Position numbers and translations under genes: made by a program. Shown piece by piece: positions 1,262 through 51,314 of a stretch of DNA of 64,000 nt (its first letter is position 1; the number at the start of each line of letters is the position of its first letter). Source of the stretch: Paramoeba atlantica (lineage: Eukaryota; Protista; Discosea). The notes under the pieces were generated by a model. The model did not search any database. It was not told the origin of the DNA and was given only the letters and a program-made list of their open reading frames with translations. The stretch lies in the NCBI GenBank assembly GCA_977017575.1, contig CDRNVI010000161.1, forward strand, positions 1-64,000, given 5' to 3'.

Positions 1262-2700
1262 CTAATAGTGTAAGTCTTGATAACAAGTCAAACTATTGTA
1301 TGAATAAACTAAAAACTGATTTGAGTGGAGAGGTGTGAGGTGGTGGTGGATAAAATTATGTTGTGCTGTCCAGACCTGAAATTTTTCAGAATACCCATAC
1401 TTGTTTAATGAAGTCAGTGCAAGTTTTCCAAGTTGATACAGAAAGTGTGAAAAAGAGTGAATATTTTTCACTCTTGTTGGAGCCTTCATCAATAAATCAG
1501 ATCCACCACCACAATCAAGACTATCATCATCAACAACCTGTTCAATTCAAGAAGACAGGTTTTTGATTAGAACCTTTCAAAAAGCTTCTTCAACAAGATC
1601 ACATTTATGGGCATGGCAACCAAGAATCTGAAGGATTTTTCCAGCCATTTGACTCAATTCTCCAACTGCTGCTGGGTTTGAAGGAGTATGATCCCTCATC
1701 ACAGATTCAAAGGAAGAGAGGCTTAAAGAATCTGAAAAGGACTGGGTTTTAGGAAATTTCTTTACCAGATTTTAGAGACCATTTAAAAGAGAAAAAATAT
1801 CCTTTGCAATTGACAGGGCATCATGATCAACTGTTTCTCAAATACTTAAATTAACATGCCTACCTTTGCCCTGGATCCCAACAGAAAGAAGATTTTGTCC
1901 TTGTGATGAACTTCCATCATGAAAGAGAGTTGAGGATTTTCATTCTTGGACTCATAGTAGTGCTTCTAATTTTGATTGGATGCTGCCTTCACAACAAATC
2001 TATTGGATTGTGGTTGGTGATGGAAGAGTAGGGTCTTTTTTCAAAAAAATTTGGAAAAATTCTCAAATTGCAGGAGAAATATTTCTCTGGGCCATATCAA
2101 GGGAAGAAAGAGAATTGCAATCCACCAACACCAAGTTCAAGAGTTCTTACCTGCTCCTCCTCTTCTTCTTTTCCTTTTTCATCATTCTCCTCATCCTCCT
2201 CAGTCTTCTTTGCAAGCAAGGAGGTCATGAAATGAAATTTCCTCAGGAAGATCAATCAAATGATGAACTTTATCAACAAAAAGATCAAGATCATCCAACA
2301 CTTTGATGTGTGGTGGGCAATAAATAAAATAACCACAAGCAGGTTAGCTTTCCTTGTTTCAATCATGACCACTTCATAAACCACCAGAAAAATCCCCACC
2401 ACTTCCACAAAAGCAGATTGCCCAACTTTATCAAAGAATTTGGGGGCCAATAAAGAAAAACAACCATTTTCATTCAAAACAAAATGTTCAACAACAATTC
2501 GCAATTTTCGGTGTTTCAATCACTGGTTCCAGGAGGTCAGTCCTTCTCTAATAATTTTTCAATCTAAAGCCTTTTCTAATTGTCTTCACCATTTCTCCTC
2601 AAACAAGGAAGGAACAGCAATGAATGGTCCAGCATAAGTCATTGCTTTGTGGTCTGGTTCTTGACAATATTCACACTACTTTCAAGAATCACTTCTTTAT
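1262..2700 (-). pseudogene. DDE transposase remnant (hAT/Mutator/P-like CxxH group), IGS A copy
   Basis: The minus frame reads through several stops: STLFHDGSSSQGQNLLSVGI ... VMRDHTPSNPAAV ... ILGCHAHKCDL ... HHHLTPLHSNQF. Two candidate catalytic Asp and a CxxH motif are visible. Stops are mostly TGA. The superfamily is not resolved. Confidence 0.6.
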
Positions 2701-3169
2701 GGGTTTCATGAGCCTTTTTTTCAAAAAAAAAAAAAGATCAGTTTTAAGAAGAGGGTCTTTGAATTCAAAATCCAAAAGAATTTTGGGGATTGAAAGAAAT
2801 ACCTGCCTTAATCAGAGTTGTACAACAATTTTTTTGAGCAATTTCAAGGGCCAGGACGATTCAACTCCAAAACAAAAGAACAAAAAAAGAAAAAAGTCTT
2901 TGTCATGGTGCTACCTGCACAACTTTGGGCATGTTTGCACTCTAGAAAGAGAGAAAGAGTGGTGGTGAGAAAGGGAGAAAGGAGAGACAAAAGAAAAACA
3001 AAGAATTCAAAAATCCCAAAAGAGAGAAGAAGAATGAAAGAGAAAGAAAAGAAAAACAAAAACAAAGTGAAAAAGACAAAAAGACAAAAAAAAAAAAGGA
3101 GGGGGGGAGGAAAGGAAAAAAAAAAAGAGATTTCAAAAGAAAAAGAAAAGAAAAAAAGAGAAAAAAAAA

Positions 3170-6100
3170 AGACTTTTTCCCCCTTGAAAAACAACAAACA
3201 ACAAACCACAAACCAACCACACCACCAATCACTTCCCACTTCATCCGAATCAATACCCACTCTCCCCTCTTCCTCTTGAACCCCACCTTCAAAAGCTCTG
3301 CTCCCCACCCCTGACATAACAAAAGATTTTCAAGATCACCATGGCCATGCCTCTCAATCCTGGGCACCCTCAAACCAGATAGCACAGAAAACTTTCAGTT
3401 CCCAAAACTTCACTCGGGCCAAGTGGAGAAAGAGTCACAGCCAAGAAGGAGAGCAAGAGAAAGAAAAAGAAGGAAAAAAAGAAGAGGTCAGAGAAAGAGA
3501 AAAGGAAGGAAAAAGACAAAGAGAACCCCAAAAAAGCGAGAGAGCAGGAGCAGAAACAACGAAGAAAGAGAGAAAAGAAAGGAAGAGAACAAAAAGAAAA
3601 AGAAAATAGAGGAGGAAAAAAAACAGGAAGGAAAAAGAATGGAAAAAAAGAGGAAGAAAGAGAAAAATCAGAAAAAGAAAAGAATGAAAGAAACAAAAAA
3701 GAAAGAGAAAAAGAACTAAATCAAATGGACAATCCTCAGGCCCAGAAGACAACTTCACATCCTCCAAAATTCCTTGGCAATTGCTCGTACCGAAGATGCA
3801 GAGGCCAACACCAAAAAGTAATAGTCTCCTGATGCGAGAAGTGCCTCCTTACATTCTGCTGGAGAATCACACCCATCCTCAACCCAGACCCACAACACAT
3901 CCAACAACTCTTCTTCAATCATGGGCACTCTACAACCCTTCCTTATGGAAGCAAAGAAGAGGCTGCAATGAACTTCATCCTCTCTCTTGAAGGAGACTCC
4001 TTCTCAAAACACATCCCCCTCTGCTACATGGACTCAGTACCACTCTGCCTTTGTGATACAGTCATCAAAACTTTTTGTGCTGTATGACACCTCTTTCATA
4101 AGATACCCCAACTCCTGATCCTCCTCCCAAAATGGATCTTTGGCTGCCTTAGAAGGGGTACTCGAGGAATGAAAGAAGTGAAATCTCGATGCACCATGGT
4201 GCGAAATTTTGAGTGGGAGAGACTCCACAAAAAACTTGAGGGCAAGCTCAGCAAACTCAAGCAAAAGAGGAGGCAGAAGTCCACCAAGAAAACCAAGGCA
4301 GACCAGATTATTGAAGAGGTCAGAAAAGGACATCTCTCCAAAGCTGCAAGGAAGCTTCAATCCAAGAGTGGATTCAGGGATCTCTCAGTCCCAGAAAATC
4401 GTGAAACTGCAAAGAACCTCTACCCAAGATCTGAGCAGGTGTGGACTCCACCAGATCGAGCCGAAATTCCTGACTGGAAACCAGCAATCCTTGAACAAGA
4501 TGAGTTTCAGTCCTTTGACTCACTTGATCTGGCCCTTCGGAGACTTCCAAAAGGCCGCACACCAGGGCTCTCAGGAATGTTTTATGAGTTTGTCACACTC
4601 CTATGCACAGACCAAGAACTCCGCTCAACCCTCAAAGAATTGACTGTCTTAATCACCAACCAAAAACTCAATGAAACCATACACAACATCATGGCAACCT
4701 CTCTCTTCATTCCTCTGGCAAAAGGGGACAAAGGGATCCGTCCAATTGGTGTTGCTGAAGTTCTCAAGAGGTGGGCAGCGATTGCACTTGTTCTTGAAGT
4801 CCAACACGAGGGAATTCCTGAGAAATTGTCCCATCAGTATGGTGTATGCTTGCCAAGTGGTGCAGAAATGGTCCACAAAGCAATATCACAGCCTATCTCC
4901 ACCTCCACCCACAACATTATGCTGCGAAACTGGACATTGTTAATGCCTTCAATTCCATCTCAAGAAAAACCATCTTTGAGAGCACAGTCCAGCTGGCCCC
5001 TGTATTACTTCCATACCTCTACACCTTCTATTCTTCAGCAACACCCCTCACTCTCTCATGACCAGAACCACACCCTCACCATGGAGGAGGGTGTCCAGCA
5101 AGGAGATCCCCTTGGGACAATTTTCTTTTGTCTGGGATTTCATGGAATCCTCAATCCAATCTTTCAGAAGGTTGATGCTCCACTGAATGCACTTCTTCTT
5201 CTCCTCTCTGTCGATGATATATTTGTTTGTGGGAGCCTGGTTGCCATTGCAGAAATCACCACTCAGATCCAGAGTGTCCTCCCAAATGCCAACCTCAAAC
5301 TTGGCACAGAAAGGGGCAAAATGGTCTGTTTCTCTCCCGAAGCGCCCAGGAGCAATGACCTCAAAAATCTTGGCATTGGGAAGGCGGAAGTAATCACAGT
5401 TCTAGGGTCACCCATCGGGCTGAACACTCAAATTTCCAAGTGGCTTCACACCCTTGCTCAAGAATACCAACAAGCATCACAAGACCACTGTTTAATAATG
5501 TTCTCCAACCCCCATGAAAGTCTTGAGCTTTTTGTCAAAACCATCACACCCAAACTAACATACATCTGTCGCACAACACCTCTCTCTTTAACCCCTTTCC
5601 AAGACTTCATCAAGCAAACCACTACAACAAACATCAATTACCTCCTCAACCCCCTCCAAGTCCCCCACCTGCATCCAAACAAAGAACTCCATCTCTCTTG
5701 AGTAGAAGCTGCAGGCCTTCCAAAGTCAAAAGGTGGTGGTGGCTTGAGCTACTCTCAGAACACCCACCAAGCAGCCTTCCTTGGCTCCTGGATCTCAGTC
5801 TACCGATCCTGCTCTGAGTTCAAACCTGAACTTATCAACCTCTTTGAAGACTTCTGGAAGAGTGACTCACCCCAGCGCCAGGCTCTCCACCAAGCATATA
5901 TGACCATTTTGAAAGCTTCATCTTGAGCGAGTGGAAACTGCCAAGTGGTACCTCTGTCCATGAGCTCCTAACTCGATTGACAGAGCCACCATCTGACTCA
6001 ATGGGCACTGGAGAAAACTACAAACCACAGAAGAAGTTCACCTCCTGTGAACTTCAGGATGTCAAAAAGAAGATCATGGACCCAACACAAGACAAAAACC

Positions 6101-7232
6101 TCTGCCGTGCAATCCGTGAGAATGAGGTTGGCCCCACCACCCACTTGTGGATGACAGCCTACCCAGACAAGGACCACCTCTGGGCCAAAGCCATATCAAG
6201 CCTTAAATGCTGAAGATTTTCGCTCAGCCTACCAATGTAGGCTTGACATAGTTGACCCACACCTTGGGGCTCTCTGCGAACTTGGGACTGTCAAGTGTGG
6301 ATTCTGTGAAAAAGAACTCTGTGCTCCATCCTCCCTCCACCTCTCAGATTGCACCAGTCGTGGAAGAGGAACCACACAAGAAGACACCATGCTCTCTGTG
6401 ACGAACTCAAGAACATTGCCAGCTGGGCGGGAAAAACAACAATCTGAGATGGAGCCTACCGGCCAATCGGGAAGTCACACAAGCAACCTGATCTTACAAT
6501 CTGCGAGTGGCAAGGCGACCAGGATCTGTGTATTGATGTCCGAGTTGTGTCAACCCACAAAACCCCCCACTTTCGCTGTGTGATCCAAACACCCACCAAA
6601 ACCCACTCTGACCCCCTATACTCGACACCCTCTCACCTGCTGCACACCATGCCAGGATCATGAAACACAGAGAATATGTGGACAGATGTCTGACTGAAAC
6701 AGACTTTAATGCAGGAAGGGGCAGAGACACCCCTGAGGAGAAACAGACCCTTAAACAAATAACTCTTTCCGATCTCCAAGGTGAAGTCATCTTCCTTCCA
6801 GCATCTTCATCCTCAGGTGGTGGAATATCCCCTGACATTAGTGCACTCCTACGATCCCTCACCTCAATTGCCCTCCAAAACAACCGGGTCCTGGATGCCA
6901 ACCCCCTCCCCCTCTTCTTAAGAACAGCAAAGAAGAAGATTTCAGCTGCACTAATGAAAGCAATGGCAAACCACATGATGAGCATATAGGAAAATCTAAA
7001 ACCCAGCAACCCCCTTTTGACCCATCACTCTCTGTGCTTCTCATCATCTCTCAATCCAAATGACATTTCCATTCCCCCCTCTTCTTTCCACATGTACTAC
7101 CCCCCTTTTTCTGCAGTTCCTCCTTTCACTGGGTGAGATATTCTGCTGAATGTGCAACCATTCCCTTCTCTTACAACCATCTATTTCGAATAAAAATCTC
7201 TTTCATTGAAAAAAAAAAAAAAAAAAAAAAAA
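3170..7232 (+). mobile_element. CRE-clade-like non-LTR retrotransposon (RT + CCHC + restriction-like endonuclease), IGS A copy, with 3' UTR and poly(A)
   Basis: RT motifs GRTPGLSG, IRPIGVAEVLKR, HQYGV..GAE, (frameshift) LDIVNAFNSISR, GVQQGDPLG, SVDD. Downstream are KCGFC..HLSDC, RRHHALCDEL and QPDLTI..LCIDVRV (PD-D/E RLE). AATAAA lies near 7188 and poly(A) at 7209-7232. The 5' boundary is approximate. Confidence 0.88.
4169..6989 (+). pseudogene. Disrupted RT-RLE polyprotein of the CRE-like element
   Basis: ORF segments 4169-5701, 4846-5061, 5744-5926, 5923-6213, about 6203-6390, about 6375-6583 and 6660-6989 join into one polyprotein via several frameshifts and TGA stops. Confidence 0.85.
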
Positions 7233-7260
7233 AGAAAAGAAAAAAAAAAAGAAAAGAGAA

Positions 7261-7379
7261 GGTCTTCAGCACTCGGGATTCGAATGTGGTCACCCACCAT
7301 TCTACTAACCGAGCCCACAGCTGCTTAACTTCCGAGTTCTGATGGGATCGGGTGCTTTCAACTGGGTATGACCGAAGAC
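7261..7379 (-). rRNA. 5S rRNA gene (intact), antisense to the 45S operon
   Basis: The reverse complement GTCTTCGGTCATACCCAGTTGAAAGCACCCGATCCCATCAGAACTCGGAAGTTAAGCAGCTG...GCTGAAGACC is 119 nt with paired ends and box A (AGTTAAGCAG), followed by T-runs. Confidence 0.96.
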
Positions 7380-7720
7380 ACTTTCTCTTCTTTTTTTTCT
7401 TCTTTTCATATCAATCTAAATTAATAAAAAGAAAAGAGAAAGAGAAAAGAAAGATGAGAGAAAAGAAAGAAAAGAGAAAAGAGAAAAGAGAAAAGAGAAA
7501 AAAACCTCAATGGAAAGAGAGAAAAAGTGGTGGAATTTCAAAAAAAGAAAGAAAAAAACAAAGAAAAAAAACAAAGAAAGAGAAGGAAAAAAAATTAACA
7601 ACCTACAAAAAGAAAGATAAGAAAAGACAGAAGAAAAGAGAAAGAGGAAAAAGAAAGACTGAGGAAAACCAAAAAAAAACAAACGAACAAAAAAACACAA
7701 AAAACAAAAAAAAGAAAAAC

Positions 7721-7767
7721 GGACCTCTATTTTGGGTCCGAATATGATGGACCTCTATTTCAGGTCC
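7721..7767. promoter_or_regulatory. Tandem GGACC-N9-GGTCC palindromic motifs upstream of 5S
   Basis: GGACCTCTATTTTGGGTCC (7721-7739) and GGACCTCTATTTCAGGTCC (7749-7767). A copy identical to the first lies upstream of the 5S pseudogene (37434-37452). Confidence 0.45.
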
Positions 7768-7920
7768 TATCAGCCCTTTTTTTCTTTTTTTTTTTTTCTG
7801 TGTGTGTAAATGGTGGTTTATTTCGGGTTTCGAGAGTTCGAGGAAAGACACTTGGGGAATTCAAATGAATTGGGAAAAGTGAGAATGAAAAGGAAGAGGG
7901 GTGACGCTTGGTGGGTGACA

Positions 7921-7968
7921 ACCAATTTCGCCAAAATTGCGAGTCGCGGAGTCGAGATTCTATATAAA
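7921..7968 (+). promoter_or_regulatory. CpG-retaining Pol II promoter: CCAAT and TATATAAA box
   Basis: ACCAAT at 7921 and TATATAAA at 7961-7968, about 250 bp upstream of ATG 8214. Confidence 0.5.
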
Positions 7969-8213
7969 GTGATGTACATATTTGGATATTTCCTTATTTA
8001 CATGTGTGTGTTTTTGGTTGTTCTTTCAGTGATTTTTTTTGTTTTTTTTTGTTCAATTTTGATTGGTGTTCCTTCTCGCCACACCCCCCCTCTCATTCCC
8101 TCGTGAACGACAACAAACACAATCAACCACACCCTCAGGTTTTGTTTTTAATTCAAAACATTTCTTTTTCTGGATAACTTGAAACAGAAAAACAACAATC
8201 AATCAATCAAAAT

Positions 8214-9229
8214 ATGGTGATGAGAGTTCAGTTGATGTCGATTGTCGAAAGAGAAGAAGAGTGGTGGGAAGTTCGAAACACTGAGAATGGAAGAGTGTGT
8301 TCTGTTCAAGCTCAAGACTTTCAAAGTCTCCGAAGGAAGACCAGGATGTGTACGGAACTTCAACTGCGGTTCGAGTGTTCTATCTTGATGATGAGTGTGA
8401 TGTTGTCTTTGTGAAACGTGACCAAGACTTGGAAGATGCTTTGTTTGTTCTCCCAAAAAAGAACGAGACAGCAAAAGCAGTGGAGAGTCAAGTCGAAGAA
8501 GAAACCAAAAAGGAGATCCAAGAGGTCGAAAATCGAGTGGGTGATGATGAAGAGAAGAAGGTTGAGAAAATGGGGGATGAGATTTCTGAGAACCCTCAGA
8601 AAAGACTCAAGGAACAACAGAAGAGAGAGAAGGAGATTGAAATGCTCAGTAAACGTGACAAGAAACTGGCAGATCAGATTGATGTTCTTGAAGAAAAGAT
8701 CGTGGCTCTCCAACGAAGAAAGGAACAGTTGACTGAAAACAAAACCCAAGTTCGAGAGAACCTTGTTGATTTGAAAAGTCAAAAGGACATTGTTGGAAAC
8801 AAACAAGAGGAAGAGGAGATTGAAGAAATCCAATCCTCTGAGGAAGAAGAGGAAGAAGAGGAAGAAGAGGAAGAAGAGGAAGAAGAGGAAGAAGAGGAAG
8901 AAGAGGAAGAGGAAGATTGTGGTAAACCAAGATCATTTGGGCAATCGAGAAAGCTTCAGAATCAACGACGAAACATCGAAAGAAGACTTTGTAATCTTGA
9001 AGCGAAAGAAAAGAAGTCAAAAAAGATGATGGAAACAGAAATTATTCTCAAGAAATGTTTGGAAGAAATCACAGAGAGGTTGGCGACTGAACCAGAAGAA
9101 GAAGAAGAGAAAGACAAAATGTTTAGAAATAAGAGAAAAGGAACTCGACATTCTTCTTCCCCACCACATGGTTCGAAAAAGAAGTTTTTCAATTCTCCTC
9201 CTCCTCCAAAGGAGAGAAGACGAAAATAA
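8214..9229 (+). CDS. PB1-like domain + coiled coil + poly-Glu + basic C-terminus protein, with one apparent 1-nt frameshift near 8340
   Basis: The frame from ATG 8214 (CAAAATATG context) gives ...DFQSLRRK. The shifted frame continues QDVYGTSTAVRVFYLDDECDVVFVKRDQDLEDAL (OPCA-like motif), then a coiled coil, a run of about 24 Glu and KRK..KKK..RRRK. CpGs are retained. Confidence 0.6.
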
Positions 9230-9454
9230 ATAACAAAATCTCTTCAATGGAACCAAACTTCTTTTTTTTGTGCTCTATTTTTATCAAGAAAAACGTTTAT
9301 TTCTTTTCTTTTTTCTTTTTTCTTCTTTCTTCTTTCTTTTTTCTTTATTCACTCCTCTTCTTTTCTTTGTTGGTTATCTCATTGTAATTTTTCTCCTTTC
9401 TTTTTTCGTCAAAAAGAATGTGTCAGATAGATGGTTGGGGGTGGGGGAGATCTT

Positions 9455-9505
9455 GATACTCTCTGGGTGCTAATTTGTGAAAATCCGGACCCAGAGAATA
9501 CATCA
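9455..9505. other. Dispersed hairpin family member
   Basis: TACTCTCTGGGT-N20-ACCCAGAGAATA, homologous to hairpins at 12808, 36783 and 53564. Confidence 0.55.
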
Positions 9506-10554
9506 TCTTCAAATAAAAAAACATCTCTTTTGTCTCTTCTTTTTTTTTGAAGATTCACTTATCTGTAAGACTGTCTTATTTTTTCAAAAAAGAAAAAGGA
9601 AAAGAAAGGGAAGGGGGGGAAAGAGAGAGAAGAGAGAAGAGAGAGAAGAGAAGAGAGAAGAGAAAGAGAAAGAGAAAATAGAAAAAAAAAAAAAAAGAAA
9701 AAAATGAGAAACTGTGAAGAAGAAATTGAAAACAAAAGGAAAGAAATCAACAAAAAGAAAAGAAAAGAAGAGAAAAAGAAAAAAGGGGGGAAAGGGAAAA
9801 AAGAAAAGAGAGAACCCATCAAAAAAGGGAAGAAAGGGGAACGAGAAAAAGGGGAACAAGAAAAAGAGGAACAAAAAAAAGAGAAAAAGTGAGAAAGTGA
9901 AAAAGTGAAAAAAAAAAAAAGAGAAGAGATAAAAAAAAAAAAGAGAAGAGATAAAAGTGAAAAAGAAAAGAAAAAAACAGAAAAGTCAAGAAACAAAAAG
10001 AAATAAAGAGAGAACCCCATCCGGTCCCATTCACAAAGGGCAAAAAAGTTCGAGAAAGAGAAAGAAAAAAAGAAGGAAAAGAAAAAAAGAGAGAGAAAAG
10101 AGAAGAGAGAGAAAAGAGAAGAGAGAAAAAAGAGAAGAGAGAAAAAGAGAAAGAGAGAAAAAGAAAGAGAGAAAAAGAGGAGAGAAAGAGAAAAGGCAAC
10201 ACAAAACCAACAAGGCCAGAAAAATTATGAGCCCTAAAATCTTTTTTGTGTGCTAAAATAAACCAGCACAATTCAATTGTTTTTCTGAGTGTCGAAAAAA
10301 TATTTTACAAGGAAATTTTTATGAGAATTTTTTTTTCAATGCCCTGAAAAACCTTTGCAATTGCGTTCCTTTCCCTTTTCCCTTGGCAACCCGGTGAGAG
10401 AGAGGAAAGAGCGAAAGGAGAGAAGAAGAGGAAAGAGAAAAAAGAAAAGAAAAAAAAAGAGAAATTAAAAAAAAAGAATTAAATTAAAAAAAAAAAGAAC
10501 TAAAAAAAAGGGAAAGAGGAAGAAGGAGGAGGGAAGAAGGAGGGGAAGAAGAAA

Positions 10555-43650: not shown

Positions 43651-44854
43651 TGAAGGTTTGTAACACTATAAGTAAAACAACTATTTAAGATAAGAAAAGC
43701 TTTGGTATTATCTTTGAACTCTAAAAATCAACATCTTATAATCACTTTTAGAACAAAAATTTTATCAATTCAATAAGAAAATAACTTATTATTGATATTT
43801 GGTGATGAAAATGATATTACATAACACCACTCATTCACTGAGAGATTATACATTACCTCTAAGTTTGAAACAAAGGATATTGTTTTGATAATTGTAAAAA
43901 TTGAAAGATTCCATCCAATAATACCAACTATGAGCATTAAAGTGATATAGAATTCATTTCAAGAGGAACAATATCTATGAGAGCAATTATGTATTAAAAC
44001 AACTTTGAGTTTTTTAGTATCTTTTTTGTAATTAAAATCAGTTTCATTAATATTCATGATCAATTGAAAGTGAGCAGCATCAATCTTTTCTTGCAATTCT
44101 TTTACATTTTGTTTCAGCTTTTCTTCAAACAAACTGCATCTCTCTGCCTCAAGTGGCTCTAAATCAATAAGAAAAAGTTGTTTTTCACTCTAAACAAAGA
44201 AATAAATCCAAGTGAAAAAGATTGCTTTTAAGAAAGTGGTATTAATCCAATCTTTGAGGGTGGTTTGGATCAATGAAACTTGGTTTCCATTACATTTTTA
44301 CATATATTTAACAATTTTATCAATTTGAAAAGGTTCAATCTTTGTAAAGTGTTTTCACATCTTTGATTTCACTCTAAAAAGCAGGTTACCCCAGGTTTTG
44401 GAAAGTTTTCTGTTTTGTTGTTAGTCAATTTGAAAAAAACAACTCACATTTGTAAAAGTTATTATTTATTCTTTTTCATTTGGACTATTAAGAATTAATT
44501 TTTTATAAAAACAATAATATTACTTTATTAAAGTTTAACAAAGAGTTAACTTTTCTTATTCAAAGGTTTTAGAAAAAAAAATGTATTCATGAACTAGAAG
44601 TTTTAAATTTTACAATGAAATTACTTCAACAAGAAGAGCAAAAGATTTTTTTTTTTTTATAAAAGAAGATAATAGATTCTTGTATATGAGTTTAGGTGAA
44701 ATGAAGCAATTAAACAAAAACCAACAAAAACAAACAAAAAACTAAAATCAATTTCAGAAACAAAATTAATTTTCTTTATTTGGCTAAAAAAAAAATATTT
44801 TTCTCAATTTGATTTTTATATTTTTGAAAAAAATAAGATTTTAAATATTCAAAA

Positions 44855-45925
44855 AAGAGAATCAGAAAATAAATTAAGAAATTACATTCAATATGGAGAC
44901 ATAATTAAGAAATTGAAATTACAAAAAATTAATATAAAAAAAAGAAAATAAAAAATAAATCAAATACATCAATTCAAAACAATTAAGAAATTTGATTGAA
45001 TCAACTTAAAAAATATCATAGATCTGAAATATAAATTCTAAAAATATCAGAGAATCAGAAAATAAATTAAGGAATTGCATTCAATATGGAGACATAATTA
45101 AGAAATTGAAATTACAAAAAAATAATATGAAAAAAATGAAATAAAAAATAAATCAAATACATCAATTCAAAACAATTAAGAAATTTTATTGAACCAACTT
45201 AAAAAATATCACAGATCTGAAATATAAGTTCTAAAAATATCAGAGAATCAGAAAATAAATTAAGAAATTACATTCAATATGAAGACATAATTAAGAAATT
45301 GAAATTACAAAAAATTAATATAAAAAAAAGAAAATAAAAAATAAATCAAATACATCAATTCAAAACAATTAAGAAATTTGATTGAATCAACTTAAAAAAT
45401 ATCATAGATCTGAAATATAAATTCTAAAAATATCAGAGAATCAGAAAATAAATTAAGGAATTGCATTCAATATGGAGACATAATTAAGAAATTGAAATTA
45501 CAAAAAAATAATATGAAAAAAATGAAATAAAAAATAAATCAAATACATCAATTCAAAACAATTAAGAAATTTTATTGAACCAACTTAAAAAATATCATAG
45601 ATCTGAAAAATAAGTTCTAAAAATATCAGAGAATCAGAAAATAAATTAAAGAATTGCATTCAATATAGAAACATAATTAAGAAATTGAAATTACAAAAAA
45701 TTAATGTAAAAAAAAGAAAATAAAAAATAAATCAAATACATCAATTCAAAACAATTAAGAAATTTGATTGAACCAACTTAAAAAATATTTTTAAAATAAA
45801 AAATAAATTTAAAAAATATTACAAAATCAGAAAATAAATTAAAACATTTTATTCAATATAGAAATATAATTAAGAAATTGAAATTACAAAAAAATAATAT
45901 AAAAAAAATTACTTTTAATCATTTC
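44855..45925. repeat. 193-bp satellite (IGS B), about 5.5 units, alternating two-monomer pattern
   Basis: Anchor C at 44922, 45115, 45308, 45501, 45694 and 45887. Units 1/3 and 2/4 share diagnostic variants. Confidence 0.95.
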
Positions 45926-45988
45926 TTATTGATTCTCTATTTCAAATATCCAAGTAAAAGAGGGCAAACAACTCCACACAAACATTTC

Positions 45989-47460
45989 ATAATGATGTAA
46001 GTTTTGATAACAGACCAAACTATTGTATGAATAAACTAAAAACTGATTTGAGTAGAGAGGTGTGAGGTAGTGAATAAAATTATATTGTACTGCTCAAATA
46101 GAATGCTTATACTTGTTTAATAAAGTTGATGCAAGTTTTTCAAGTTGATACAGGAAGTGTGAAAAAGAGTGAATATTTTTTACTCTTGTTGGAGCCTTCA
46201 TTGATAAGTCAGATTTACCACCACAATCAAAACTACCATTATCAATAACTTATTCAACTCAAAAAGACAGATTTTTGATTAGTGCCTTTCAAAAAGCTTC
46301 TTTAACAAGATCACATTTATAGGCATGGCAACCAAAAATCTGAAAGACTTTTCTAGCCATTTGATTCAATTCTTCAATTGCTGCTGCTAGGTTTGAAGGA
46401 GTATGATCCCCCATTACAGATCCAAAGGAAGAGAGGTTCAAAGAATCTAAAAAGGACTAGACTTCAGGGAATTTCTTTGCCAGATTTTGTAGACCATTTA
46501 AAAGAGAAAAATTATTCTTTGCAATTGACAAGGCATCATGATCAACTGCTTCTTGAATACTCAAATTAACATGCCCACCTTCACCCTGGATACCAACAGA
46601 AAGAAGATTTCATCTTTGTGATGAATTTCCATCATGAGAGAAAGTTGGGGATTTTAGTTCTTGGATCAGTAGTGCTTCTAATTTTAATTGAATGCTGTCT
46701 TCACAACAAATCTGTTGGATTGTGGTTGATGATGAAAGAGTAAGGTCTTTTTCTAAAAAAATTCAGAAAAATTCTCAAATTGCAGAAGAAATATTTCTCT
46801 GGACCATCTCAAAGGAAAAAAGAGAACAAATCAAATTGTGAACTTTTTGAGAAAATTGCAATCTACCAGCACCAAGTTCAAGAGTTCTTACCTGCTCTTT
46901 CATTTCTTCTTTTTCTTTTTCATTGTTCTCCTTGTCCTCTTTAGTTTTCTTTGCAAGAGCAAGGAGGTTATGAAATGAAATTTCCTTAGAAAGATCAATC
47001 AAATGATGAACTTTTATCAACAAAAAGATCAAGATTATTAAATGCTTTGATGTGTGGTGGGCAGCAAATAAAATAATCACAAGCAGGTTGGCTTTCCTTG
47101 TTTCAATCATGACCACTTCATAAACCACCAGAAAATTCCCCACCACTTCCACAAAAGCAGATTGCCCAACTTTATCAAAGAATTTGGGGGTCAATAAAGA
47201 AAAACAACCATTTTCATTCAAAACAAAATGTTCAACAACAATTCACAATTTTCAGTGTTTCAATCATTGGTTCCAGGAGGTGAGTCCTTCTCTAATAATT
47301 TTTCAATCTAAAGCCTTTTCTAATTGTCTTCACCATTTCTCCTCAAACAAGGAAGGAACAGCAATGAATGGTCCAGCATAAGTCATTGCTTTGTGGTTTG
47401 GTCCTTGACAATATTCACACTCAGCTTGCACTACTTTCAAGAATCACTTCTTTATGGGTT
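45989..47460 (-). pseudogene. DDE transposase remnant, IGS B copy of 1262-2700
   Basis: Colinear with the A copy and more mutated. Confidence 0.6.
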
Positions 47461-47919
47461 TCATGAGTCTTTTTTCAAAAAAAAAAAAGATCAGTTTCAA
47501 GAAGAGGGTCTTTGAATTCAAAATCCAAAAGAATTTTGGGGATTGAAAGAAATACCTGCCTTAATCAGAGTTGTACAACAATTTTTTTGAGCAATTTCAA
47601 GGGCCAGAACAATTCAACTCCAAAACAAAAGAACAAAAAAAGAAAAAAATCTTTGTCATGGCACTACCTGCACAACTTTGGGCATGTTTGCACTCTAGAA
47701 AGAGAGAAAGAGTGGTGGTGAGAAAGAGAGAAAGGAGAGACAAAAGAAAAACAAAGAATTCAAAAATCCCAAAAGAGAGAAGAAGAATGAAAGAGAAAGA
47801 AAAGAAAAACAAAAACAAAGTGAAAAAGACAAAAAGACAAAAAAAAAAAGGAGGGAAGGGAGGAAAGGAAAAAAAAAAAAGAGAGATTTCAAAAGAAAAA
47901 GAAAAAAAAAAAAGAGAAA

Positions 47920-50900
47920 AAAAAAAGACTTTTTCCCCCTTGAAAAACAACAAACAACAAACCACAAACCAACCACACCACCAATCACTTCCCACTTCAT
48001 TCGAATCAATACTCACTCTCCCCTCTTCCTCTCAAACCCCACCTTCAAAAGCTCTGCTCCCCACCCCTGATGTAACAACAGATTTTCAAGATTGCCATGG
48101 CCATGCCTCTCGATCTTGGGCACCCTCAAACCAGATAGCACAGAAAACTTTCGGTTCCCAAAACTTCACTTGGGCCAAGTGGAGAAAGAGTCACAGCCAA
48201 GAAGGAGAGCAAGAGAAAGAAAAAGAAGGAAAAAAAGAAGAGGTCAGAGAAAGAGAAAAGGAAGGAAAAAGACAAAGAGAACCCCAAAAAAGCGAGAGAG
48301 CAGGAGCAGAAACAATGAAGAAAGAGAGAAAAGAAAGGAAGAGAATGAAAAGAAAAAGAAAATAGAGGAGGAAAAAAAACAGAAAGGAAAAAGAATGGAA
48401 AAAAAGAGGAAGAAAGAGAAAAATCAGAAAAAGAAAAGAATGAAAGAAACAGAAAAGAAAGAGAAAAAGAACTAAATCGAATGGACAATCCTCAGGCCCA
48501 AAAGACAACTTCACATCCTCCAAAATTCCTTGGCAATTGCTTGTACCAAAGATGCAGAGGCCAACACCAAAAAGTAATAGTCTCCCGATGTGAGAAGTGC
48601 CTCCTTACATTCTGCTCCTTTTCCCACCACAGGAAGTCACAAACTCTCTGTCACCCTCTTCCTCCTCCCCCCCCCCAACCTCTCCCATCCCTAACCTCCC
48701 CTCCCTGCTCTCCCTCCAATCCCTCCTCCCACCCTCCCTCCCCAATTCCCTCCCACCCTCCCTCCCCACTCCCCTCCCCCACTCCCTATCCCTCTCTGCA
48801 TCTCAATTTTAATCCTGATCTCGATCCCTCCAGCACCCCTCCCCCTTCATGTAACAACCCTGAATGCAATGGTAAAGCAGAAGTTGGCTCCCACATCTCC
48901 TGTAACCACTGCCAAATGCATTATTGTTCAACACAATGCCACAACAGCACAGAAAACCATCCCATCACCCCTTTTCCTCCTCCCCCATCTCACCCCTCAC
49001 CTCACACACCTCTCCACCCTCCTTCCCATCCACCTCATTTGCCCCCCCCCCAAGCCCACCTCACCACCTCCCTTCCCACACCCCCTCTCACTCCCCTCTC
49101 ACTCCCCCTCCCCAACAACTTTCCCACCGCCCTTCTTCTCATGGCCCACCTTCTTTTCAACAAACTCCTCCCTCCCTCTCCCTTATCCTTGAACTCTTCG
49201 AAAATGGCTCCTATGAAGATATAGTCTTAACTGTCCCCCGCTTCAGAAACTTGGATCGCGCAAGAACAAGCTCCCTCCAAACATGCAGAGCTCGTGACCT
49301 CCTTGGACTTGGAATCAACCACTTCTTTGATGGCCAACACCATTCTCTCCTCAGATTTCAAAAATGCTCAACAAACAAAGCAAGATGAGATATCGTCCCC
49401 CTTCTCTTGAATCGCAAGTAGCACGGGGAGAATAGCCTTTCTCCTACAGTTCTGGCAACACTGGAAACCTGCACCACAGCCTCCCAAAATCTCGCTCACA
49501 AATGTCAAAGACAACTTCTTTTTCATCTGTGGGGATGGATCTGTTGCTACCAACCCAAATGGATGGTGCGTTGGAAGCTCATCACTCTGTGTCATTCGTG
49601 AGAACAAGGAAATTGTCCACTCTCTCATCCATTCTCCCAAGCCCTGAAAACCATATTAACTGGAGAAACCACGAGAACAACTCTTTGGCAGATAGGATCA
49701 CAAGTTTAGCAGTACACAGAGGATGCCCTGACAACACCTGGAGAATCACACCCATCCTCAACCCAGACCCACAACACATCCAACAACTCTTCTTCAATCA
49801 TGGGCGCTCTACAACCCTTCCTCATGGAAGCAAAGAAGAGGCTGCAATGAACTTCATCCTCTCTCTTGAAGGAGACTCCTTCTCAAAACACATCCCCCTC
49901 CGCTACATGGACTCAGTACCACTCTGCCTTCGTGATACAGTCATCAAAACTTTTTGTGCTGTATGACACCTCTTTCATAAGATACCCCAACTCCTGATCC
50001 TCCTCCCAAAATGGATCATTGGCTGCCTTAGAAGGAGTACTCGAGGAATGAAAGAAGTGAAATCTTGATGCACCATGGTGCGAAATTTTGAGTGGGAGAG
50101 ACTCCACAAAAAACTCGAGGGCAAGCTCAGCAAACTCAAGCAAAAGAGGAGGCAGAAGTCCACCAAGAAAACCAAGGCAGACCAGATTATTGAAGAGGTC
50201 AGAAAAGGACATCTCTCCAAAGCTGCAAGGAAGCTTCAATCCAAGAGTGGATTCAGGGATCTCTCAGTCCCAGAAAATCGTGAAACTGCGAAGAACCTCT
50301 ACCCAAGATCTGAGCAGGCGTGGACTCCACCAGATGGAGAAGAAATTCCTGACTGGAAACCAGCAATCCTTGAACAAGATGAGTTTCAGTCCTTTGACTC
50401 ACTTGATCTGGCCCTTCGGAGACTTCCAAAAGGCCGCACACCAGGGCTCTCAGGAATGTCTTATGAGTTTGTCACACTCCTATGCACAGACCGAGAACTC
50501 TGCTCAACCCTCAAAGAATTGACTGTCTTAATCACCAACCAAAAACTCAATGAAACCATACACAACATCATGGCAACCTCTCTCTTCATTCCTCTGGCAA
50601 AAGGGTCCAGCAAGGAGATCCCCTCGGGACAATTTTCTTTTGTCTGGGATTTCATGGAATCCTCAATCCAATCTTTCAGAAGGTTGATGCTCCACCGAAT
50701 GCACTTCTTCTTCTCCTCTTTGTCGATGATATATTTGTTTGTGGGAGCCCAGTTGCCATTGCAGAAATCACCACTCAGATCCAGAGTGTCCTCCCAAATG
50801 CCAACCTCAAACTTGGCACAGAAAGGGGCAAAATGGTCTGTTTCTCTCCCGAAGCGCCCAGGAGCAATGACCTCAAAAATCTTGGCATTGGGAAGGCGGA

Positions 50901-51314
50901 AGTAATCACAGTTCTAGGGTCACCCATCGGGCTGAACTCAAATTTCCAAGTGGCTTCACACCCTTGCTCAAGAATACCAACAAGCATCGCAAGACCACTG
51001 TTTAATAATGTTCTCCAACCCCCATGAAAGTCTTGAGCTTTTTGTTAAAACCATCACACCCAAACTAACATACATCTGTTGCACAACACCTCTCTCTTTA
51101 ACCCCTTTCCAAGACTTCATCAAGCAAACCACTACAACAAACATCAATTACCTCCTCAACCCCCTCCAAGTCCCCCACCTGCATCCAAACAAAGAACTCC
51201 ATCTCTCTCAAGTAGAAGCTGCAGGCCTTCCAAAGTCAAAAGGTGGTGGTGGCTTGAGCTACTCTCAGAACACCCACCAAGCAGCCTTCCTTGGCTCCTG
51301 GATCTCAGTCTACC
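47920..51314 (+). mobile_element. CRE-like retrotransposon, IGS B copy: keeps the N-terminal Zn-finger region, has an internal RT deletion and lost its 3' half
   Basis: 48481-49224 encodes two Cys-rich repeats (CLYQRC..CEKC..C..HH; CNNPEC..CNHC..C..CH) around Pro-rich tracts. It lacks A 4727-5093 and is truncated at the equivalent of A 5804. Confidence 0.85.

Follow-up and report, generated by a model that had tools for sequence, protein, structure and literature searches.

An RLE-type retrotransposon beside a 5S rRNA gene in a Paramoeba atlantica rDNA spacer: probably one insertion multiplied with the rDNA unit

This report concerns a degenerate non-LTR (long terminal repeat) retrotransposon with a restriction-like endonuclease (RLE), which lies tail to tail with an antisense 5S rRNA gene in a ribosomal DNA (rDNA) spacer of Paramoeba atlantica, within a stretch of 64,000 nucleotides that we call the window. 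In the CRE clade (CRE1/2, SLACS and CZAR), a reverse transcriptase (RT) is combined with a C-terminal CCHC motif and an RLE, and the elements occupy a fixed position in spliced-leader genes. Utopia, Togen, NeSL-1_TV and LIN are RLE-type elements of the NeSL group (Kojima and Jurka 2015, PMC4640811); Togen is specific for (TG)n, NeSL-1_TV, LIN15 and LIN25 are specific for tRNA genes, and Utopia of oomycetes, in the NeSL clade, was described as unique in having an RNase H domain upstream of the RT (PMC4640811). Among retrotransposons with an apurinic/apyrimidinic endonuclease (APE), Mutsu of the L1/Tx1 group is specific for 5S genes, inside which it inserts about 20 nt from the 5' end; it has many independent, often intact copies, with subfamily-specific targets (PMC5340908). 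The Dictyostelium TREs are likewise APE-type and occupy a large share of the genes transcribed by RNA polymerase III (Pol III) by many independent insertions, TRE3 about 100 bp downstream of tRNA genes and TRE5-A upstream of rDNA-linked 5S genes (PMC5391098).

The present element resembles R2 (R2Bm, R2Tg and R2Pm; structures 8gh6, 9dou, 9nl3 and 9nl2) in that a single protein carries the RT, then the CCHC motif and then a PD-(D/E)XK endonuclease, in that its modelled C-terminal domain is best matched by R2 structures, and in its location in the rDNA. It differs from R2 in sequence, with about 13% identity in the fold match and no significant phmmer match to R2Bm (E 0.25), and in position, the window element not being in the 28S gene and a fixed target site not being evident. 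Neither a Myb nor a C2H2 N-terminus is recognised in the element; a Cys-rich finger and RNase H-like motifs are found instead. With the NeSL group, compared by motifs and insertion sites, it shares the RLE type; its relatives end in (TG)n or (CA)n, and D..E..D..D-type motifs upstream of the RT are a possible further likeness. Among the copies analysed, none was found in or beside U2, spliced-leader or tRNA gene bodies. The CRE clade, compared by architecture and insertion site, has the same combination of an RT with C-terminal CCHC and RLE, while copies of the present family sit in A-rich tracts. Mutsu, too, is a non-LTR retrotransposon associated with 5S genes; the window element, in contrast, represents a single event outside a 5S gene, which was left intact. 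As for the TREs, a tail facing the 3' end of a Pol III gene resembles the geometry of TRE3, but 40 exact-match 5S sites are empty here, and Pol III genes are distant from the majority of the family copies. The element shares its architecture with R2, NeSL and CRE, and it shows the defining behaviour of no site-specific family.

One dead insertion in 22 copies

In the genome searched (45.7 Mb, 248 contigs), 22 copies of the element were found at 97-98% identity, each adjoining a 5S gene and all on rDNA-array contigs. Their shared flanks, together with a shared +2 frameshift that is missing in independent copies, show that they go back to one dead insertion which was multiplied as DNA. As for the flanks, the 1.75 kb on the 5' side (2109-3860) are present with every 5S-adjacent copy and never beside an element-free 5S gene, and the junction has a common layout in all 22 copies, namely an A-run broken by GAGAG, the same 12 nt and then the 5S gene. 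As for the frameshift, a +2 CA insertion at 6368-6383 is present in 22/22 of the 5S-adjacent copies and throws the RH/PD core of the endonuclease out of frame with the CCHC knuckle. The same lesion occurs in L023 and L025, two members of a 5'-truncated group (L023-25) in other rDNA units, with a variant indel at that site in the third member, L024; in the alignment, the independent copies L027/L037 and L031 do not have it. In a tree of the last kilobase, the 22 copies form one clade with a long stem. Depending on the rDNA unit, the codon at 6445-6447 reads TGA, CGA or CAA in these copies (L001-L022), that is, it has undergone transitions at CpG. From the premature stops that differ between copies at CpG sites, it follows that decay went on after amplification.

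The features of the window copy, of its junction with the 5S gene, of an element-free 5S pseudogene used for comparison and of the copy in the second rDNA unit of the window (unit 2) are as follows.

3720-7208, plus strand: body of the degenerate RLE-type non-LTR retrotransposon (tblastn, DNA copies at 97-98% identity; 5' boundary uncertain)
4739-5375, plus strand: RT core with RPIGV, GDPLG and VDD motifs (Pfam RVT_1)
5090-5116, plus strand: GDPLG motif
5207-5224, plus strand: VDD motif
6296-6352, plus strand: CCHC zinc knuckle preceding the endonuclease (C24, C27, H38 and C42 invariant in alignment A1)
6368-6383, plus strand: +2-nt (CA) frameshift between the CCHC knuckle and the RH/PD core (alignment of copies)
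6379-6680, plus strand: restriction-like endonuclease core with RH, PD, D and K..Y (motifs, alignment A1)
6379-6408, plus strand: RH motif (translation)
6481-6501, plus strand: PD motif (translation)
6526-6549, plus strand: D motif (translation)
6663-6680, plus strand: K..Y motif (translation)
7209-7233, plus strand: poly(A) tail (A25), which differs among rDNA units in length and in its GAGAG interruptions
7234-7260, plus strand: A/G-rich sequence native to the 3' side of the 5S gene, the minus strand being a T-rich terminator tract
7261-7379, minus strand: 5S rRNA gene (Rfam RF00001, 102.8 bits, model positions 1-120)
36935-37040, minus strand: decayed 5S pseudogene with an internal deletion (Rfam 37.5 bits, slightly below the cut-off)
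48617-51314, plus strand: unit-2 copy of the same insertion, N-terminal part kept (unit alignment, tblastn)
48850-48927, plus strand: unit-2 Cys-rich finger (translation motif)
49528-49545, plus strand: unit-2 DGS motif (translation)
49679-49699, plus strand: unit-2 N..AD motif (translation)

The window copy is dead and incomplete, and its frames are broken. Translation of 5700-7230 yields the CCHC motif in one frame and the RH, PD, D and K..Y motifs in others; the endonuclease core is out of frame with the CCHC motif, and a premature TGA stands at 6445-6447. The first-pass annotation of this DNA had let the element begin at 3170, for which we found no support: non-repetitive element sequence starts near 3720, behind a GA-rich tract. 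The longest open reading frame (ORF) of the family (L004, 1007 aa) spans 3860-6580 of the window in tblastn. Relative to unit 2 and to L002-L022, the window copy is devoid of about 1165 bp of N-terminal coding sequence, deleted at 3860/3861; the missing piece is found in unit 2, where it measures 1121 bp (48617-49737), and in most other copies. Unit 2 (46850-51314 aligned) has in turn lost 366 bp inside the element, equivalent to window 4727-5092, as well as the sequence equivalent to window 5805-9803, which comprises the 3' part of the element, the 5S gene and a further 2.4 kb or so.

On the plus strand, the 3' untranslated region (UTR) of the element ends in ...CTCTTTCATTG and is followed by A25 (7209-7233), by 27 A/G-rich bases (7234-7260) and by the 3' end of the 5S gene. 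The tail-to-tail junction with an antisense 5S gene, as first proposed from the sequence, is borne out by the Rfam match on the minus strand, and so is the succession of a poly(A) tail and A-rich bases, while the span given for the tail (7209-7232) had to be corrected by one base. The first T4 run behind the 5S gene, at +5 to +8 on the 5S strand, is intact. The pseudogene at 36935-37040 carries no element, and its flanks (for example 36902-36934) show homology to the flanks of the full 5S gene. When it is compared with the occupied site, homology starts inside the A-run, which places the insertion about 27-35 nt behind the 5S gene.

Two further ideas about these sequences were considered and abandoned. 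The pseudogene could not serve as an empty-site proxy for the 5' junction, since homology extends beyond the 5S sequence by no more than about 35 nt at the 3' end and about 85 nt at the 5' end; further upstream, matches are to low complexity only. The idea that the element had carried the 5S gene along as a retroposed passenger was rejected: the gene has its full length, and unoccupied copies have the same flanks on either side.

Family assignment and relatives

The element is an RLE-type non-LTR retrotransposon with RT, CCHC and PD-(D/E) endonuclease, and its RT lies among those of RLE-type elements. In the decayed genomic copies, Pfam gives weak RVT_1 matches (E 6e-4 to 8e-3; E 0.008 in the window copy). 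An exhaustive HMMER library search gave 961 RT matches, the best of which, P0001, is an intact metagenomic protein of 1403 aa with 44% identity and an RVT_1 E of 8e-9; its CCHC-RH-PD-D-K region is uninterrupted. An open C-terminal frame of 285 aa is also retained by an independent fragment in the genome itself (L037). When this domain was aligned with 19 relatives (alignment A1), the CCHC, RH, PD and K..Y columns were invariant and the second D nearly so. Its AlphaFold (AF2) model, with a pLDDT of 78, is best matched in Foldseek by R2Tg of zebra finch, R2Bm of silkworm and R2Pm of big-headed turtle (probability 1.0), after which Hjc-type and other PD-(D/E)XK nucleases follow. A hidden Markov model (HMM) of the CCHC-RLE region matches 78 of the 92 RT neighbours of at least 800 aa; nine of the 14 HMM-negative neighbours were scanned, and these contain RVT_1 only and no APE (Exo_endo_phos) domain. 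The conserved CCHC, RH, PD and K..Y motifs, the R2-like fold and the RLE-bearing neighbours therefore show that the architecture assigned in the first-pass annotation was right. Footprints of target-primed reverse transcription are found in the family as poly(A) tails, as 5' truncation of L035, L036 and L037, and as a 20-bp target site duplication (TSD) at L031.

Upstream of the RT, motifs hint at an RNase H-like domain, as in oomycete Utopia. A D..E..D..D pattern precedes the RT in P0001 and P0015, the motifs DGS..E..(T/G)DS..N..(A/G)D are conserved in alignment A3, and RNase_H is annotated in 44% of the members of the nearest ESM Atlas cluster. The putative domain stays a lead because three other approaches lent it no support: Pfam gave no match at all in the N-terminal region at E up to 10, a PDB profile search returned nothing relevant, and the AF2 model of the region, built from a 4-sequence alignment, was unusable (pLDDT 37).

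Outside this genome, relatives are known from metagenomes, from a Closterium assembly and from one NCBI assembly. The terminal repeat is (CA)n in the metagenomic relatives L039 and L042 (37-42% identity) and (TG)n in L040 (26% identity), while L043, from the NCBI assembly, ends in a CA-rich run. On the contigs of L039-L044, most of which stop in the terminal repeat of the element, no small RNA genes were matched by Rfam. In L042, two tandem copies of a 3' UTR of about 230 bp are present at 3800-4187, with (CA)n after each, which looks like an element inserted in the tail of another. The modest interest that the family retains lies in this divergent RLE lineage, in its microsatellite-tailed relatives and in the possible N-terminal RNase H-like domain.

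Insertion sites and explanations of the 5S junction

We counted 5S sites with a 27-nt 5S pattern and scored recurrence of the flank with a pattern that joins the 12-nt 3' flank to 20 nt of the 5S gene, allowing at most one mismatch; empty sites were recognised from such pattern matches and their coordinates. The 27-nt pattern finds 68 5S or 5S-like sites, of which 62 match exactly. The element occupies 22 sites, and 40 exact-match sites are empty. The 12-nt 3' flank recurs at 47 5S genes, 27 of these unoccupied, so that empty sites with the very same flank do exist. None of the approximately 19 other loci of the family and sister families is near any of the listed 5S genes; about 12 more distant ones (31-64% identity) were recovered in a six-frame search with the C-terminal domain.

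The surroundings of the other copies are A-rich. L037/L027 sits in a long (GAAAA)n-like tract, L031 is flanked by its 20-bp A-rich TSD (A8GTTA7TA), and L035 and L036 are short 3' fragments with tails in A/G-rich runs; in the 10 kb around each of L031, L035, L036 and L037, no tRNA, 5S or other Rfam gene was detected. L032 is a rearranged copy, the tail of which faces the 3' end of a tRNA-Lys gene about 150 bp away. Taken over all analysed copies, the flanks are A-rich tracts or the surroundings of 5S or tRNA-Lys genes, and an Rfam scan of the window and of L031-L038 yielded no snRNA. The family thus appears to land in A-rich tracts generally and does not look like a 5S-hunting lineage. Targeting of 5S genes or Pol III terminators, which the first-pass annotation had put forward, is not supported: the 22 copies amount to one amplified event, 40 of the 62 exact-match sites are empty, and the other family loci lie away from 5S genes. 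The first-pass annotation itself had named insertion of other copies at A-rich sites without relation to 5S as grounds for refuting the idea.

Our preferred explanation, to which we give a probability of about three in four, is a single chance insertion of the RLE-type element into an A/T-rich tract behind the 5S gene, which then died and was amplified with the rDNA unit. At the start, target-primed reverse transcription would have placed one copy about 27-35 nt behind a spacer 5S gene, in the T-rich tract there. The RLE would nick the T-rich strand of the A/T-rich tract, and the A-rich tail may then pair with the nicked strand and prime cDNA synthesis; such pairing of poly(A) with the T-strand would fix the tail-to-tail orientation. 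Cleavage of the second strand would then produce a TSD, at most about 20 bp long. The T-run behind the Pol III terminator would be one of very many such tracts in the purine-skewed, low-complexity spacer. The inserted copy probably died by the +2 frameshift, which parts the CCHC knuckle from the catalytic core, and would subsequently have been multiplied as a dead copy, at the DNA level, to at least 22 copies within the rDNA unit of about 40 kb. Later, the copies would have decayed by CpG transitions and deletions. We infer this order of events, i.e. insertion, death, amplification and decay.

Several observations weigh against this explanation. Of about seven independent loci, two have a Pol III gene nearby (the 5S gene of the window and the tRNA-Lys gene at L032). 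At the 5S-adjacent copy no TSD could be resolved, in agreement with the first reading of the sequence. Among the rDNA units (L001-L022, substitutions), divergence is 1.4% in the element body versus 4.2% in the 5S-side flank; this gap may be due to low-complexity flanks and conversion between paralogues, and the body and flank distances do correlate positively (Mantel r 0.25, p ~0.01). Finally, there is the group L023-25, which starts 60 bp from a tRNA-Asp gene. Behind the tail of L025, 12 + 13 nt of the 5S junction are preserved, and in the tree L023-25 form the sister group of the 5S-adjacent copies, outside the clade of the latter. The simplest reading is that the group represents an early rearranged duplicate of the 5S-adjacent copy. 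Because of the junction remnant and the sister position, a sibling insertion, which would be the second one beside a 5S gene, is a possible alternative, as is 3' transduction.

Other explanations were considered as well. The family might be strictly specific for an A-rich or GA-rich microsatellite, with the 5S gene merely sitting in such a tract. This is conceivable, if rather doubtful. Purine-rich low complexity is present on either side of the 5S gene (3420-3718 and 7380-7750), L037 lies in its (GAAAA)n-like tract, the relatives L039 and L042, L040 and L043 end in (CA)n, (TG)n and a CA-rich run, respectively, and RLE clades often target microsatellites (PMC4640811). On the other hand, the L031 target is an A-run without a defined repeat unit, the independent junctions are too few to define a motif, and the terminal repeat may be templated by the element instead of being derived from the target.

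As for a preference for the 3' flanks of Pol III genes in the manner of TRE3, via the terminator T-run or the Pol III machinery and with the 5S copy as one product, we consider it improbable. It would be in keeping with the tail facing the 3' end of a Pol III gene both at the 5S gene and, about 150 bp away, at tRNA-Lys (L032); the 5S-junction remnant in L025 could mark a second event; and the tails of other retroelements lie about 50 bp upstream of tRNA genes here, so Pol III-directed integration does occur in this genome. However, such a preference is hard to reconcile with the 40 empty exact-match 5S sites and the 27 empty genes with the same terminator flank, with the lack of any Pol III gene in the 10 kb around L031, L035, L036 and L037, and with 0 of about 19 other family loci being near a 5S gene. 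The inactivating CA lesion shared by L023-25 fits derivation at the DNA level, and the relatives end in microsatellites on contigs without a small RNA gene. If Pol III terminator targeting were nevertheless true, it would constitute a new target class for early-branching RLE retrotransposons and a second invention of the TRE3 strategy.

A related proposal, which in our estimation has little chance of being correct, is that of an undescribed RLE lineage with an RNase H-like domain that would favour T-rich tracts behind Pol III genes, represented by the 5S gene, tRNA-Lys and possibly the L025 event. A TRE3-like safe-haven strategy would then have been reached independently by an element with a restriction-like endonuclease.

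Very improbable, in our view, is that the 22 copies are separate retrotranspositions of a trans-mobilised defective element into one rDNA site with R2-like specificity: although the body is more uniform than the flank, poly(A) length and structure differ between units, and intact C-terminal frames elsewhere in the genome (of the L037 type) could supply the protein, all copies agree in at least 1.75 kb of 5' flank and carry the same lesion, all 22 cover the whole query so that none is 5'-truncated, the variation of the GAGAG-interrupted A-run resembles slippage in one inherited tract, body and flank distances are positively correlated, and many identical target sites are empty. A single amplified insertion also carries a caution for other loci, since many identical junctions in tandem arrays can be one event multiplied by amplification of the unit; a shared inactivating lesion together with shared flanks provides a quick test of one event versus many.

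The rDNA setting

According to Rfam and self-alignment, the window consists of two eukaryotic rDNA units in tandem, each about 40 kb long. Rfam further detected four tRNA genes and one full-length 5S gene, the one at 7261-7379, which is antisense to the rRNA operon and to the retrotransposon. The rRNA genes of the operon are located as follows.

23737 and 63689: 18S genes (Rfam)
26047: 5.8S gene (Rfam)
26526-30573: 28S gene (Rfam)

The two spacers of the window are alignable, their differences being large indels, and each opens with a 193-bp satellite array upstream of the element (1-1265 and 44729-45993). Between contigs, the rDNA units vary greatly in length and content, with a spacing of the small-subunit (SSU) genes of about 35-100 kb. 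This unusually large and heterogeneous rDNA unit, with its tRNA genes, 5S genes and several transposons, is likewise of modest interest. The decayed 5S variant represented by the pseudogene of the window was found again on contigs C149, C172 and C185.

Upstream of the 5S gene, the region 8004-9375 is gene-like and contains an ORF (8297-9229, plus strand) for an E/K-rich coiled-coil protein, which has no match in Pfam. At least six unoccupied 5S genes have a copy of this region (79-86% identity) about 700 bp downstream, i.e. in the opposite arrangement. Another repeated gene-like sequence was observed just past the tails of two different insertions, in the same orientation (L023 4150-5000; L035 556-1238, 5489-6434 and 8213-9153).

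The tail of another retroelement (...CAGCAGTCACC followed by A24) is present at 30746-30860 between 15-bp direct repeats (TTTTCTATATTTGTA). It lies about 50 bp upstream of a tRNA-Gly gene, a TRE5-like position, and a similar retroelement tail precedes a tRNA-like sequence near 31750-31810.

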